Shown here: positions 7,401 to 18,110 of the stretch, in pieces
Layout: each line of letters starts with the position of its first letter
How positions within the stretch are numbered: position 1 is the first letter of the stretch
Assembly (NCBI GenBank): GCA_964199315.1
Contig: OZ116712.1
Span: forward strand, 20,460,001 to 20,524,000
Source of the DNA: Orbicella franksi
Lineage: Eukaryota
Length of the DNA stretch: 64,000 nt
Direction of reading: 5' to 3'
Notes under the pieces: generated by a model
Database searches by the model: none
Told to the model about the DNA's origin: nothing
What the model saw: only the letters and a program-made list of their open reading frames with translations
Made by a program: the position numbers and the translations under genes

Positions 7401-10400
7401 AATTTAGTGAGCTGTCTTCCACTTGTTATAAGATGCTAAAGACATCAAAGACTCATCTTCCACAAACAGTTTTAAAAGTAAACTGAAAACGTGGTTTTTT
7501 AAACAAGCATTTTTAAGTTGAAAGTTTTAGTTATATATCTTTTCAAATTTTTATCTGTTTTTGACATTTTCTTAATTTGTTTTTATAGATTTAATTTCTT
7601 GTCAAGTGCCATTAAGAAATGGCACTCTATAACTTTTAATTTATTATTATTATTATTATTATTGTTGTTGTTGTTGTTGTTGTTGTTGCTGTTGTTGTTA
7701 TTATTATTATTATTAAAAGTAGTTGTGTCTTTCTAGGTTTCAGTGAACTTGAGTGTTTAGTTTCAAGCAGTCCTGGGGGGCCTGAGATTTTGTCAGGGTC
7801 TAAGCTCTGAGACACAGAGGGACCCTTTTGCTGGTTTTTACTGGTCATGTGATCTTGAAAAAACTAAAAATCATAACCATTCAATAAATAAAGTCAAGAA
7901 TCTGGGATATGATGGATGCCTGATATGTAAACAACCTTGCCAAGAATTAGGTCTGTGATTTTTCATTCATGTGTTATTCAGAAAAGTGTTTCACCCAAAT
8001 TTGTAGGGCTTCGTATGGAGATGCAATGCAATGTGTCGGCCGTAAAGTAAAAAACATCTGTCATTGACTTTTACTATTGAAATGAAAAGTTACTACTGTA
8101 GAGCTCTGACACATTGAAATTAATACTTCTTCTAGTCCAAGAACTGTTCAGTTAGCAAAGACTAAAGTGTTTTAAAACATCAAGTTCCTAAAGGGTCTTA
8201 CATCTGATAAAACTAAAACCTTAAAAGGAAACTAACTAAAGGTAATTTTTTGATTTTGGAATATGGCTATGTCACATGAAAACCAGCAATATCAACAACA
8301 CAGATGGGATGCAGCCACATAATGAAATGTTTGGGAATTAATGAAACATTATTTTATGTTATCCAGCTTGCAAGCTAAACAGAACTCAAACTTACAGAAT
8401 AAAATCACCACCATCCATTGAGTCTCTGAGTTGAAAGTAAGAATTAATGAAACCCTTGACTCATTTGTTTCTTCTCAGAAAGAAAAACCCTTACAATGGC
8501 AGTGCATTAATTTCCTTACTGGGTATGTTTAAAGGGATCAGAGAACAATATTTAAATCATTCTATTTAATTTAGTAACCAGTTTGAATTATATTGTCATT
8601 TGCAAAGCAGTGTAAATTACCAGTTCCTCTATATACAGTATGGCAGCTGATGTTAAAATCTGCCTGACTGACTGACTGGCTTCAAATGACAGGATGACAA
8701 ACAGGCCAGACATACACTCAGATATAAAATACCAAGGGAGAGAATGGCAGGGATGAGGACCTGTGTGACTATATGCAGATTGACTGATAGAGGGACATAC
8801 AGACTTATTGACCACAAAAACCTCAGTATGTGATTGATAATTTATCAATTGACTAAGAAGGTCTGACTCCAGCTTTCTTTCTTCACTCACTCATCACATT
8901 GTTTTCAAATGTCTTGAATAGTCTTTAGGTTTTGTGGTCCTTGAGTGACCTTTGAGATATATCATAAATTAACCAATCTTGCCCTAAGAAACACAAAACA
9001 TAACCAAAAATTCCCTAGCGATCAAAGGACGTCCTGTCCAGCAGGATTCTGTCCTTTGCTTACCTGATGGACAAGTGAGTTTTTGGAGCTATTTTACCCC
9101 AAAATGTAAGTTACATTGAGCCATTCAACTGAATGTTACAGACCTTTGCACAGCTTGTATACTTGCTGTTACAGTAATATCATGTCCTAAGATGTAAAGG
9201 GATGATATGAGGTCACTCCACTGAACTAGCTCTCCCAATGGTCCACCTTTACCTGCCTCCTCGGCAAAGTGCAGTTGACCTTCATTAGCCAACAAGCCTA
9301 TGTGAATTAAAACCTGAAAAGACAAAATAAAGTAAAGAGAGGCTGCAAAAATGGTGGGCCTTATTTTGGTCAGTTTACATTAAAATTAGAAGCCAATGCA
9401 TTTGGGAGTCAAATATAAATTATTATAATGTTTTGCAGGACTGTCATTAAGGGCCAGATAAACAGCTGGCTACTGGCCAATCTTTGGTCACCTACTATAG
9501 TCTCATTTGACCATTAATTTGGAAAAGAAACTTAAAGTAATGAAAAGATTTCGCACAAATATTGTTACAAGACATCCATTTCAAATGTCGGAGTCAAAGT
9601 GAAGATGCAGTTCAAGAAATTTAGATGCTTGGAGATCCTACAGAGTATTTCCAGCATTTTCCAGTCAGTATTGACTGACAAACACTGGAAATGGGATCTC
9701 CAAGCATCCAAATTTCAAACTTTTCTGGGGAAGCGTGCCAGTTGCGACCTTTTATGAATCTATGAGGTACATTAAAAGCTTTAAAACAACTTGACAATTG
9801 TTACGTCCCAGAGTGCGCACAAGTATAGACTTATGCCTAGCATTCACATACCTTCTTCTGGGCAGTTTGGGTCAAATCTCTCTTTCTTTTCAACGATGAA
9901 AATGCCGTCAGCCAGTGCGGCCACATCTGCATGATACGCTTTTTAATCCACTGGAATTTCACTGGGTTGTCATCCTTTAGCAGATTCAAAAGCCCGTCCA
10001 CATCTACTCTTGTTAAGTCCTGCCAAAACCAAAAGCAACACAGGCGAGTTTTTAAGCTAAACAAACTGGAGCTTTTAAAAATGTCCCAAAATTAATGTTT
10101 GTCTACAGGTACTAGGTAACAGCTGATTGACCGCTAATCTTAGGCAGTTCCACTAAGCAGTTCTTGTACTTAGATAACAATCAGCAGAGAGTAGACAATT
10201 TTAGTAACACTCTTGAAACTAGCTGTGAACATACATGTATTAACTTACAGCTGGTCGATTTAATTTTGGTAAATTTCCATCACTTGCCATCTTTCTTCCA
10301 GGAAGCAAGGGACACCACCTCTCAACCTGACAAAAAAGAAAAGCAGGAAAACTTAAAGCTTTAAACAGAAAGGTGCATTTTACTTTGCATTCTAAAAATT

Positions 10401-13400: not shown

Positions 13401-16400
13401 ATGCGAGAATGCAAACAATAACTCAAATTTTCGTGGTGAAAATGCAAGTCCCGTTACTCGAAAAATATGAGAAGACTGTTTGCATTCTCATACCCATTCT
13501 GTATCTGTTCTGTACTTATTCGCAAACGCGTTCCCTGTTAGGTTTCTTCTGAGCGGTACTGTATCTATCAGTGTATGTTGTTTGATCAACCTTAATTAGG
13601 AGTGGACATAAAAAAAATATATAATTAATATTTAAATTTTAATTGCCCTCTCTGACCCAACTTGATTTGAAGCTTACCTCACTAAGGTAGACAAGGATGG
13701 AACAAAGACTTCCATTTACACCATTTTCAGCATACTTTGGATCTGACTTCCACTGTTCTTTCATCCACTACACAGCGGAAAAATAATGGAGCAACAACTA
13801 GATCAGCGACTACATCTGTAGAAATAACTACAGTCGAACCTCCCGCAAGCAACCACCCAAATGTCAAGCTTGGGTTGTCGCAAACAAGAGCTTAGACCAT
13901 ATCGGGTCAACACTTTGCCTCATTAGCATAATGGTAACTTCAGAGAGTTATTCCATGCTTTAAATGTGTTATTCATGTGAAAAGTCAATTTTGAGAACAA
14001 ATTTGGTACTTCCCATTGAGAAAATTTCCGTCTCTTGTACCAGCCAGGAATGCAATAATGTGGACAACAACTCATTATCCAATTTTTGCCTAATTATATG
14101 TCAAGTAGTTGTTTACGGGAGGTTAAGAGCAAAAAAAAATTTCCAACTTACAGCTCTAAAAGTGGACATTGTTGCTTGCGAGAGGTGGTCACTTACAAGA
14201 AGTTCCAAATATAGTGATTACACTTGGGAATTTTTGGTATTTTGGAAAACTGGTCACTGAGGAGAGATGGTTGCTTACAAGTATGAGAGGTGGTCGCAAC
14301 CGGAGGTTCAACTGTATTAAGTAAATAATGCATTGTTCCAGAATATATCCATACCACTTCCACAGAAGTAGTTTTAGTTTAAATCCTCCTCCATCTCATT
14401 TCCTAGAAATTCTAGTTTAACTTCATACTTTCCCCTTAAATTTTTCTTTTGTGACCCTTCACTCATTTAGAATTTCAAATGACCCTCCACAGGTTGGGTA
14501 GAGTATTTTCTGGAACCAAACGATGCACATTATGAAAGATTGTAACCCATTAAAGCCTGCCGCCTGACCAAGGCCAAACCAAACGACGTTGACTTTGACT
14601 TTATTATTATTCTTATCATCATTATTGCTATTATTATTATTATTTAGTTTTTATTATAGCATTTTAGCCTTATTTTAATTTGTAGTTTTTTATTTATACG
14701 CTCACTAGAATCTTCAGAATTGAAGGAGGTGAGTCGCCCAGGAAGAAGAAGAAGAAGAAACTAATAATTAACTGTAATTATCACTGTAATTAACACCAAT
14801 GGATGTTTTAGTGAATACTAAAATAAGGGAAGCTATTCATCAGAGAATTAAAACCAACTCTGAACATGCAAACTCTTTCTGTAAATTCATTTTTACACCT
14901 TTATCGATTCTCAGGATTTGTACTCCTTATTTTTCACACAACCTTGACAATGACTTCATAAAGACAACGAAACACGATCGGTTATTATCGTCAGTTTTTG
15001 CTTGTTTATGAATAACTAAATCCTTATTGATAATTATTGAATAATCACAGGGCTGATCTAGACTACAGTAAAGTTTTAATAAATTACTACCTCCACTCTT
15101 TTGTTGCATTCAGGAAATGCTGGATTGTCCGGAATGTAACAGAGTTCCTCATCTGCAAATCAAGCAATATATTGTTAATTAGATTGAGCAGCAATTCACC
15201 AGCAGTTGGTGTAATGTTCCCAAAGACCCAATCACTCATTAATTCACTAAAATTATTGTTATTTAAAAGAAATACTATTATATGATATACTTTATTATGA
15301 TGTATGTAACCAACAGGCTGCAGTACTGCTTACCTATTGGCCTGGTTAGATTATTGATTGTGTTGTTCAGAGACTTGATAGCTATGCTTAGATGCCTAAA
15401 TTCCATGGTGCTGTTCACTATTACATTTTCAACTTGATTCTCAAGATTCTGAATTCTTGCCAGCATATTTTGTAAAAGAACTGCAGTGGCTTTCTTCATC
15501 TCCCGTACATCTCCTGTGAACAAAAAATGTGCATCCCAAGGTTACCCCCAGTTACTTTGCCAGCACCCAGCAAGGGTTTGATCAACGTTTTCAGCAGGAG
15601 GGAAACTGTTTTTCACAGGCAGGCAAAACTACTTGAACTGAACTTCTTTATAGGAAAATTTTTCCTCTAGTTGGTCAAACCAAGAAGGCAAAATCATCCT
15701 TACAATTTAGCAGGTGCCCAGCTCTTAATGGAACCCCTCCCCAGTTATAATACACCTGGGTGAAAAGAGGCACCATGGAAGTAAAGAGTCCTGAATAAAG
15801 ACATTCTCATCTCTAAAGGCTACACTCCTTTTGATCAGCAACAAGAATTGCAACCTCTGGCTGGACCCAATTTCCTGGGCATGCCTAGAGTATTAATTTT
15901 GTTTTATATTCTCAATCACATTTGTCAGACTTGACAGGAAGTCTGTGAATTGAGGACATCCGATGTCACACCCGCCTAGCGGTCGTGATTCTTATTGCTG
16001 ATCAGGAGTACAGCCTCTGGAGATGGGAATGGCATAAAGATCACAACCTTCTTGTGAGAAACAGGGGGCTAAGCCTGTCTAGAGCTGGTGAGACAGTCCC
16101 ATCTTACCAACTTGGGTGGCTAAATTTTCACCGTGTCGAATTTGGTTCATCTTGCCTCCCGACAGAGCTATCCTGCAAGCAGACGTCAACTATTTCCTTT
16201 GCTTATGTTCCAGTTTCATGCTGTCTCTCTAGAATTCAGGGGCCATGATTTAACTGATTGCTTGACAATAAGCATTGATAAAAGTCAGCTGTGACTGGCT
16301 ATCAACACTAGATGCTTGACATAATTTATAGAGTATCATGTAATGTACTTTCCAGCAGGTTTTCATTAACTGAGGTATCAAACTGTACAAAGCAAAACAG

Positions 16401-18110
16401 TGGAAACTGGTCATGCATGCAGACCTATCACTATTGATCGTCATGTCTCTACTGTACTTTGTTAAAACTTCTCCTGGTATACAACACAGCATATAGTGCA
16501 CTTTGGAAACAACTGTGAAGCTCATACATGTCGATCAGAAGGCTAAGATTAAAAGAGAGCGACAAATACTGCAAACCATAATCCCAATTTACTTCATTAA
16601 TATGCATGTGTAACCAAAATTTGTAATAGTAATTGGACTGAGTGAGTACAATTCAGGGAGGAATCACATGAGTAATTTCAAAATTGGACAAGCATAAAGC
16701 ACAAGGCCAATCTGAAATTAAGAGCATGATTAACCACTGAATTCTATGACACGAGGTCCAGTGACTAATCAGTCGCATCAATAACAAATTTTGAAATTAA
16801 AGTCTTTTGAGAGTCTCTTGAGCAAAAGTCAGTTGCACCTTCCTAAGTTTTCAAAATTAATGTAGGAAACATTAATTTTAGGAAGCCATAAGAGTGGGTA
16901 TAATTGACATGTGAACAATGTAGACCCAATTGCAAAAAGTTGTACTTGGATACCTATATAATTGGACACCTACGTCATTGCACGCCCATTACATGACAAA
17001 TTGGTGCGCAGAGAACCAATTATGATAAATAATTTTGCTGTAGATACGATTAACAACACAAACAGCAGGATACCAGAGCAAGACTTGCAACAGCACGAAC
17101 ATTTGCTATTGTCATGCCAGCTTATTGAGGGAGTGTGGAAATTGATCTGCGGTGTTCTTATTATCAAACAAGATGAAAGTGTCAACAACTTTTGCTGTTG
17201 TTCATCACCCAATTCTCCTCAAAATGGCACGTAACATTGGCGTCACAAACGGCTTAGCAGTCTTCTTCAAAACATGAAAATTAATGTTTTTCAGAAGTCA
17301 CTTTTCCATGTGAAATGAAGTATGAAATAACATAAATCTGCATACAATCCATGCGGAACTCGCGATATTATAAAATTACATCCTAAAACTAAAGATCAGG
17401 GCTGAAAACTTACCTGAAGCTGAGCATGTCCAACCAGAAATTTATAAATCTCTAGGGCTTAATTTAAGTTAATAAACCGTATCCTTTGTACGCAAAGCAA
17501 GGTCATGCAACGAAAAATAAATGAAAAAGGGTTGTGATAGAAACAAATTCCACATAAAAATATCCCTGAAAGTAACTGTCAGATCAAGACAAAGTCGAAC
17601 AGTAAATAAACGGGAGTCTTTACATTCACTTTCGGCTGTTTTCATAGGCATAATAATTTACTGCAGACATGTACAAAAAGACAACTGTTAAGGAACGAAA
17701 ATCGATGTAGATGACGAACATACAGCAAAATTGTAAACACTGGAACACTGTTAAGACCAAAATACAGGGAAATTTGCTAGAATTTGTAAATTGTACGGGC
17801 GCTAAGGAACTTTAGCTAACAAAATACAGGAAGTCAGGCATAATATTTCTTATTTACCATTGTCTGAATCTCCAAGTCCATTTGTATACAACCCTTTTTC
17901 CTTGGCGATGGCATCTATATACTCCTTCGATAGCGCTATTATCTTCTGCTTTAAGTATTCAGATTGCGATCGTCTGTCGTTGAGCTGTAGTTGGATTAAA
18001 TACATCCCCCAAACCAGGCTGAGAACTATCAAGATGATACCTAGTCGATGAGACGTCAGTCGAAAGGTTCGCCACCTGCTTCTAGGTTTGTAGGTTCGGT
18101 CGCCCGTCAT
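1413..18110 (-). CDS. MGAT5: Alpha-1,6-mannosylglycoprotein 6-beta-N-acetylglucosaminyltransferase (GnT-V) with a triplicated N-domain, 885 aa
   Basis: 23 GT-AG coding exons in transcription order: 17858-18110, 15334-15513, 15091-15152, 13678-13767, 12800-12913, 12548-12637, 11279-11377, 10583-10675, 10249-10326, 9852-10019, 9144-9313, 7068-7199, 6576-6715, 5942-6066, 5350-5421, 4930-5025, 4566-4649, 4340-4402, 3730-3846, 2976-3050, 2375-2471, 1865-1922, 1413-1614. They sum to 2658 nt in one frame. Type II TM segment LGIILIVLSLVWGMYLIQL. GnT-V motifs KGGPLGELVQWSDLI, DSFGTE, HSPDNTFLGFVV, GLGFPYEGPAPLEAIANGC, TSQHPY, WPPLKAL and C-terminal LLFSCTG..RLCPCR..KEQVAL. Confidence 0.96.
5577..5870 (+). 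mobile_element. tRNA-derived SINE in an MGAT5 intron (antisense to the gene)
   Basis: Pol III A-box-like TGGCCTCATGG (5577-5587) and B-box GGTTCAAGCCC (5620-5630), followed by a core gtgttcttgggcaagacac. The 3' part catcccatccaggggggagt recurs at ~3940-3965. Confidence 0.75.
7640..7715. repeat. Compound microsatellite (ATT)n(GTT)n(ATT)n
   Basis: Read directly from the sequence. It produces the spurious poly-Leu and poly-Thr/Ile ORFs in the track. Confidence 0.95.
13123..13561. mobile_element. Tc1/mariner-type MITE, 439 bp
   Basis: 34-bp TIR cagtaccg(a/c)tcagaagaaacctaacagggaacgc with one mismatch. TA target duplications at 13121-13122 and 13562-13563. Internal cc(a/g)ttc subrepeats. Confidence 0.85.
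13831..14314. mobile_element. Tc1/mariner (pogo-like) MITE, 484 bp
   Basis: TA|CAGTCGAACCTCC ... GGAGGTTCAACTG|TA. Internal gagaggtggtcgcttac subrepeats. A related copy lies at 55451-55802. Confidence 0.8.
14330..14525. mobile_element. Short MITE-like dispersed repeat; second copy at ~34930-35115
   Basis: Ends ttccagaatatatccatac ... gtattttctggaa are imperfect inverted repeats. The same terminal motifs occur at 34930-35115. Boundaries are approximate. Confidence 0.55.
15802..16031. mobile_element. MITE-like element with imperfect TIRs
   Basis: cattctcatctct...ttgatcagcaacaagaat versus attcttattgctgatca...ctctggagatgggaatg form imperfect inverted ends. Confidence 0.55.

Follow-up and report, generated by a model that had tools for sequence, protein, structure and literature searches.

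The N-glycan branching enzyme GnT-V, encoded by MGAT5 and belonging to family GT18, carries a non-catalytic luminal N domain ahead of its GT-B catalytic fold. In the human crystal structure this N-terminal domain comprises residues A128-Y207, is independent of the GT-B fold and highly mobile, and is tied to the catalytic part by the disulfide C172-C338 (PMC6107550). The structure paper deferred the question of what the N domain does (PMC6107550), and in a later study, in which the domain was delimited as Ala128-Pro200, its deletion sharply cut activity on glycoproteins and not that on oligosaccharides or a glycopeptide (PMC8889256). The window considered here, a 64,000-nucleotide stretch of the coral Orbicella franksi (GenBank assembly GCA_964199315.1, contig OZ116712.1, positions 20,460,001 to 20,524,000), contains an MGAT5 gene that encodes three tandem copies of the core of this domain, named M1, M2 and M3. 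Such a triplication had been proposed from the letters of the DNA alone, in what is called below the sequence-only reading, which also rightly stated that human GnT-V depends on its N domain for glycoprotein and not for free-glycan acceptors (PMC8889256). Taken as a whole, the evidence is in all likelihood best explained by an expressed three-module MGAT5 of cnidarians that arose by one triplication, with M3 as the ancestral copy and with M1 and M2 as untethered and conserved additions.

The three-module gene and its transcript

The modules lie on seven exons, A to G, which run from 15152 down to 10249 on the minus strand. When this strand was read, all seven stood exactly at the positions given by the sequence-only reading, with AG/GT borders and zero stops; the lengths of exons B to G are divisible by three, and that of A alone is not. 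Their splice product of 208 residues contains three modules of about 53 residues, each composed of a Cys, some 10 residues, a second Cys, the segment encoded by the W-exon (WM..W.SD..Y..GV.GS.CS...YLSE) and a closing VE.WCP, with four conserved Cys per module. Exon A (15091-15152) starts M1 with its first and second Cys, and exon B (13678-13767) is the M1 W-exon, which reads WM...GVNGS.CS...YLSE and has an N-x-S sequon and a Lys at the position of the human tether Cys. Exon C (12800-12913) is fused, joining the end of M1 (VEQWCP) through a 15-residue linker to the start of M2, and a fused exon equivalent to it is also found in Rhopilema and Hydra. The M2 W-exon, exon D (12548-12637), has GVDGS in place of a sequon and again a Lys at the tether position. 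Exon E (11279-11377), likewise fused, joins the end of M2 (VEHFCP) through a 10-residue linker to the start of M3, so that both exons reported to span a module boundary do so. Exon F (10583-10675) is the M3 W-exon, in which the tether Cys is kept (SDPCY, human Cys172), and exon G (10249-10326) holds the end of M3 (VERWCP) and a linker toward the catalytic region. Exons A, C, E and G are placed by their splice borders and by RNA joints, B, D and F by RNA and by the profile described below, and F in addition by the module tree and the structural model. The whole block sits between a coiled-coil stem and the GT-B catalytic domain.

The identity of the module was established with a 30-position profile built from W-exons B, D and F. 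In the whole 497-Mb genome these three exons score 80-83 bits and the next place 37 bits, which excludes chance and, together with the 208-residue splice product, bears out the presence of three tandem copies. In the human GnT-V chain 5zib_A the same profile has a single match, at WMKDMWRSDPCY... (E 3.6e-16), in agreement with the one human copy at about residues 145-197 named in the sequence-only reading; in the numbering of the 741-aa mammalian orthologue the module extends from Cys145 to Pro197. Since the repeat unit equals human residues ~145-197 only, and the alignment to 5ZIB starts at residue 144 while the crystallographic domain is A128-Y207, the coral module appears to be the core of the GnT-V N domain and not the whole domain. 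In an alignment of 100 modules from 37 proteins, its four core Cys (human 145, 156, 183 and 196) are kept by every module of the window and, with few exceptions, by the 66 cnidarian MGAT5 modules; Sanderia M2 and Desmophyllum M3, each known from an automatic gene model, are among those that deviate. The four Cys and the W, GV.GS and YLSEVE-type motifs proposed to be conserved across the copies are shared by all three coral modules.

All three copies are present in the mRNA. Raw reads from four poly-A RNA-seq runs with the same species label (X21-X24) were aligned to positions 9800-15600, coverage being low in X21 and X22, so that X23 and X24 supply nearly all reads. All eight consecutive junctions are supported at similar depth (19-36 reads in X23 and 17-34 in X24): on the minus strand, 15334>15152, which leads in from the stem exon, has 36 and 17 reads in X23 and X24, respectively, followed by 15091>13767 (27 and 18), 13678>12913 (19 and 17), 12800>12637 (26 and 21), 12548>11377 (26 and 18), 11279>10675 (30 and 21), 10583>10326 (26 and 25) and 10249>10019 (28 and 34). 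They include the five junctions for which the sequence-only reading had suggested RNA mapping, each of them seen in both X23 and X24. No module-skipping joint was detected at a threshold of at least 5% or 3 reads in the four runs. Moreover, the closest database protein, coral P0165 (859 aa, 92% identical over the modules), carries all three modules and is encoded by an assembled contig whose 2,981 nt leave no room for the introns of the gene, and several other coral contigs that are too short for introns likewise hold three modules. Within the introns, many RNA reads match partially at 11076-11242 and 13861-14316, with consistent loose ends and numerous base differences, and odd joints are seen inside these stretches (11140>11218 and 13930>14022), as expected of reads from transcribed repeats that lie elsewhere in the genome.

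The gene around the block is intact. It occupies 1416-18110 of the minus strand, from the start codon at 18110-18108 to a last coding exon that ends at about 1416, and tblastn matches its exons to Actinia P0003 and coral P0165 from the N- to the C-terminus. The sequence of the first exon is that expected of a type II membrane anchor. Used here as a proxy, P0165 shows a full-length match to PF15024 (1-557/557, E 1e-241) and one to the stem region PF15027 (E 5.5e-14), which together with the end-to-end tblastn match confirms the assignment to MGAT5. Also on the minus strand are the stem exon upstream of M1 (15334-15514, with its 3' end at 15334 set by an RNA joint), the next exon downstream of the block (9849-10019, with its 5' end at 10019 set in the same way), both matched by tblastn, an exon at 9137-9316 that contains the equivalent of human Glu297 (tblastn, residue alignment), and an exon at 7070-7201 whose KKLCPQK holds, in the alignment, the catalytic-domain counterpart of human Cys338, to which the M3 tether Cys would bond. 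The catalytic and acceptor residues named for the human enzyme (E297, E520, E526, R558, D378, F380, W401 and K554; PMC6107550) are kept in cnidarians, with F or Y in place of W401, and the exons of the window show GGPLGELVQWSD, the first of these lying in the 9137-9316 exon, and VVDSFGTE. As the named residues are intact, the protein should be an active branching enzyme, its predicted reaction being the transfer of beta-1,6-GlcNAc to the alpha-1,6-mannose arm of N-glycans.

Distribution, conservation and age of the copies

A profile search of 1.84 billion representative sequences gave 270 matches, among which multi-copy proteins rank at the top, e.g., those of Actinia tenebrosa (XP_031559579.1), the jellyfish Sanderia and a Stylophora fragment. 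In a search with the Actinia protein, modules were counted with a local hidden Markov model in the best 120 of 729 matches, and the following counts rest on the matches listed. Three modules are found in 28 cnidarian-type proteins, almost all full length and including the product of the window; the 27 database proteins among them span Scleractinia, Actiniaria, Scyphozoa and Hydrozoa. One module is found in 90 proteins from vertebrates, molluscs, an annelid, echinoderms, amphioxus and unnamed sequences, and also in four short cnidarian models that are truncated or have dropped W-exons. Full-length proteins of 795-929 aa come from Nematostella, Actinostola, three Porites species, Oculina, Desmophyllum, Rhopilema, Clytia and Hydra, next to transcriptome and metagenome sequences, and RefSeq models with three modules exist for Actinia, Nematostella, Porites lutea, Rhopilema, Clytia and Hydra. 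The homology survey that had been proposed thus finds the three-module layout in Anthozoa, Scyphozoa and Hydrozoa, and the layout is a phylum-level trait that is not special to this coral gene. The sequence-only reading had allowed that multi-copy N domains might be the norm across non-vertebrate MGAT5; this is so for every full-length cnidarian MGAT5 retrieved, but bilaterian invertebrates have one copy.

A reduced module count is seen in Pocillopora damicornis P0169 (pdam_00000668), an old Nematostella model (P0161), Stylophora P0001 (PFX20412.1) and isoform X2 of Xenia P0179. Automatic models lose the 90-nt W-exons or begin inside a module, so that species appear to have fewer modules than they do. 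The Xenia model starts with the tail of an upstream module, and octocorals probably also carry more than one. The same coral genome contains two further GT18 paralogues, at G000:C15:237518-237601 (L004) and G000:C10:26379676-26379774 (L005), in each of which one module is detectable ahead of exons with matches to the catalytic domain.

The three copies differ in a regular manner. The C172-type tether Cys is present in 22/22 cnidarian M3 modules and in 0/44 of M1 and M2, which mostly have Lys, while its C338-type partner is found in all nine cnidarian sequences aligned, that of the window included (exon 7201-7070). Both residues are thus present in the window, and an M3 disulfide is predicted from them. 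M3, the only copy with the tether Cys, is the ancestral one; M1 and M2 are N-domain homologues that cannot be tethered in the known way. Between Anthozoa and Medusozoa the modules are 54% (M1), 58% (M2) and 62% (M3) identical, which is above the 44-50% of whole proteins and argues, as had been proposed, for long-term selection on the copies; M1 and M2 come close to M3 in conservation and are under purifying selection. The N-x-S/T sequon (GVNGS) occurs in 21/22 M1 and 22/22 M3 modules and in 1/22 of M2. Where exons B (M1, 13678-13767) and F (M3, 10583-10675) have this sequon, M2 and most bilaterian N domains have Asp. The M2-M3 linker measures 10-12 residues in 20/21 proteins and the M1-M2 linker 5-47, and none of the three modules has lost the core Leu equivalent to human L189.

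In a tree of 75 modules and 55 columns, modules group by position and not by species. All 22 M1 copies form one clade (support 97/88), and M1 and M2 split from M3 and the single bilaterian copies (support 96/82); exon F is orthologous to the single bilaterian N domain. The coral, Rhopilema and Hydra genes agree exactly in their intron positions, those around the fused exons included, and the two introns inside the module recur in a limpet gene that has a single module. The module tree and the shared intron positions indicate one triplication before the split of Anthozoa and Medusozoa, and the simplest reading of these comparisons is a single triplication that started from M3 and is at least as old as the cnidarian ancestor. 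From the fused exons the sequence-only reading had concluded that the duplication breakpoints fell inside coding sequence. For the first duplication this is plausible, as a coding breakpoint, or else a later loss of an intron, is needed to form a fused exon. The second, however, could have had purely intronic breakpoints: since the limpet gene shares both intra-module introns, a later unit made of a W-exon and a fused exon could be duplicated within introns.

The extra modules: predicted structure and proposed role

Structure prediction, also among the checks proposed from the sequence, was carried out on P0165. In its AlphaFold model (54-sequence alignment, mean predicted local distance difference test, pLDDT, of 78.5) helices of 14, 5 and 10 residues recur three times, at 134-169, 202-237 and 265-301, and the linkers between the modules are of low confidence. 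The catalytic part resembles human GnT-V 6yjv (Z 44.9, root-mean-square deviation 2.0 over 502 residues), the next family reaching Z 15. Residues 253-859 superpose on 144-741 of 5ZIB (Z 43.9), the sole entry with the N domain; given that residue 144 of 5ZIB aligns to residue 253 of the model, M3 occupies the place of the human N domain. When folded alone, M1-M2 gives a pLDDT of 86.5, and its sole significant match in the PDB is 5ZIB (E 9e-4). A Foldseek-independent fold search of this model against 48,161 PDB representatives returned nothing above Z 2.8, and the weak similarities to CARD and to viral coat proteins that are mentioned in the papers were not reproduced in that search, so that none is claimed for the modules.

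Several points weigh against the explanation of the locus as an expressed cnidarian MGAT5 with one old triplication. Most of the RNA reads trace back to two samples of a single study, and with short reads no molecule is covered from end to end. The models are those of P0165, a 92%-identical proxy, and not of the window's own product; the predicted template modelling score of the M1-M2 model is low (0.47), in line with an undefined relative orientation of both modules, and the disulfide pairing and module-module contacts are predicted only. Hydra M2 is the sole misplaced row of the tree, which has only 55 columns. As an alternative to a cnidarian gain, two copies could have been lost in bilaterians, a choice that depends on the state in sponges, placozoans and ctenophores. 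Lastly, what the extra copies do is something we can only infer.

If the three-module enzyme works in the manner of its human counterpart, M3 would be tethered by its disulfide to the catalytic domain, and the extra, untethered M1 and M2 would extend the arm that human GnT-V requires for glycoprotein acceptors. Such an extended arm could offer more or different contact surface to the polypeptide part of substrates and more reach from the Golgi membrane. By analogy with the human enzyme, it is a real possibility, if somewhat short of an even chance, that M1 and M2 extend the glycoprotein-acceptor arm in this way, adding both contact surface and reach. A more tentative proposal goes further. The comparisons suggest that the N-domain module is a mobile extracellular module, and it could be an autonomous binding unit and no mere appendage of one enzyme, as its stand-alone arrays in Hydra and its fusions with GH17 and CotH would suggest; with a division of labour among its copies, the three-module arm of cnidarian MGAT5 might then read the acceptor protein, with the number and identity of modules setting which glycoproteins receive the beta-1,6 branch. 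M3 would here be tethered, M2 held at the fixed spacing of 10-12 residues and M1 carried on a free linker.

The extra modules could instead act mainly as a rigid spacer, in which disulfide-locked domains raise the catalytic domain off the Golgi membrane and bind nothing specific. Their location between the stem helix and the catalytic domain in the model would suit such a role, as would the M1-M2 linker, since a length of 5-47 residues is what is expected of a tolerant spacer. However, an identity of 54-58% across the Anthozoa-Medusozoa divergence, above the whole-protein level, would not be expected of a spacer, nor would position-specific marks such as the near-invariant sequon of M1 and M3, the GVDGS of M2 and the near-fixed M2-M3 linker, and this explanation is considered unlikely. 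Alternatively, the extra N domains could serve trafficking or assembly, i.e., exit from the endoplasmic reticulum (ER), Golgi retention or partner binding, without contact to the acceptor. Both structure papers raise a role in transport or partner binding (PMC6107550, PMC8889256), and the Lec4A mutation L188R of the hamster enzyme (human L189, the L of YLSE), which lies in the N-domain core, traps GnT-V in the ER; the corresponding Leu is kept in all three coral modules. Nevertheless, the ER trapping may be mere misfolding (PMC6107550), the human enzyme without its N domain largely still reaches the Golgi (PMC8889256), and the present data give no evidence of a partner; a role of this kind is considered slightly less likely still than the spacer.

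Because exons B to G are divisible by three and skipping would keep the frame, M1-M3 might also be alternative cassettes, with all internal exons in phase 0, that yield isoforms of one, two or three modules, and NCBI does list isoforms for Hydra and Xenia. Yet the four runs contain zero skipping joints at the threshold of 5% or 3 reads, the consecutive junctions have similar counts, and contigs of intron-less size from several corals hold all three modules. Cassette splicing is very improbable in general, and for the sampled tissues it was rejected on account of the missing skipping joints. That the extra exons are decayed duplicates or chance open reading frames outside the functional protein, a notion favored by their small size only and by their omission from some automatic models (Pocillopora P0169 and the old Nematostella P0161), can practically be dismissed, as they are spliced into mRNA and kept in three cnidarian classes with every Cys intact and confident predicted folds.

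The locus among known systems

The enzyme family and the N domain themselves are already known. In the literature no description of multi-copy N domains was found, in a search that left most subscription journals outside, and the triplication, its phylum-wide conservation and the layout with a single tether are apparently undescribed, although the proteins are already in public databases. The cnidarian enzyme, with one tethered and two untethered copies that bear signatures of their own, amounts to a natural experiment that has run for several hundred million years and provides a handle on whether N domains read the acceptor polypeptide. It also matters for annotation. Pfam is without a model of the N domain: PF15027 describes the membrane-stem region, and the first position of PF15024 falls near human residue 172, in mid-module, which is why three PF15024 stretches are reported in cnidarian proteins and why matches to GT18 on module-only proteins are misleading. 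Run on single exons, Pfam gives weak PF15024 matches at positions 1-20 (E ~1e-3, below the family cut-off), and on exons A, C, E and G alone no match. In addition, several coral and anemone gene models omit the 90-nt W-exons.

The module is also found outside animal MGAT5. Hydra vulgaris has at least four loci (LOC105846441, LOC136085974, LOC101236113 and LOC101237025) for small proteins that consist only of 3-5 tandem modules (P0002, P0151, P0152, P0271, P0273, P0009 and P0012), most of them with a signal-peptide-like start; some of these arrays, free of a catalytic domain, are named MGAT5 A-like by NCBI because PF15024 starts inside the module. In P0062, an MMETSP protist transcript with a signal-peptide-like start, three modules precede a GH17 glucanase domain. 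Further occurrences are P0016 (a Logan contig), P0029 (ENA) and P0052 (Tara), a set whose layouts comprise a CotH kinase domain trailed by three modules, an array of several modules (5 stretches) spaced by Ser/Pro-rich linkers, and a Lys-rich region with two modules behind it.

Among described systems, the human GnT-V N domain (5ZIB; PMC6107550, PMC8889256) is the closest to the coral modules, which align to its residues ~145-197 with all four Cys, W..W.SD, GV.GS.CS, YLSEVE.WCP and L189. Coral M3 keeps the C172-type Cys and the catalytic domain its C338-type partner, and M3 superposes on the human domain in the model. In contrast, human GnT-V has one N domain where the coral has three in tandem, its tether Cys is absent from coral M1 and M2, vertebrates have Asp where coral M1 and M3 have the N-x-S/T sequon, and the crystallographic domain A128-Y207 is longer than the coral repeat unit, a core of ~53 residues. 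Similarity in principle only is shared with the lectin domain of MGAT4A/B, the stem domain of POMGNT1 and the SH3 domain of FUT8 (PMC8889256), in which a non-catalytic luminal domain shapes the choice of glycoprotein; their folds are unrelated, tandem triplication is unreported for them, and membership of the coral modules in these groups is not claimed. GnT-IX/MGAT5B, C. elegans gly-2, bilaterian MGAT5 and the two coral GT18 paralogues belong to the same catalytic family and place an N domain before the GT-B fold, but each has one detectable module, whereas the cnidarian MGAT5 orthologue alone has three. The stand-alone arrays of Hydra and the GH17 and CotH fusions, finally, share with the coral enzyme the same module, in tandem arrays of 2-5 copies, and differ from it in that the GT18 catalytic domain is absent; in Hydra, moreover, the modules abut via CPC junctions.

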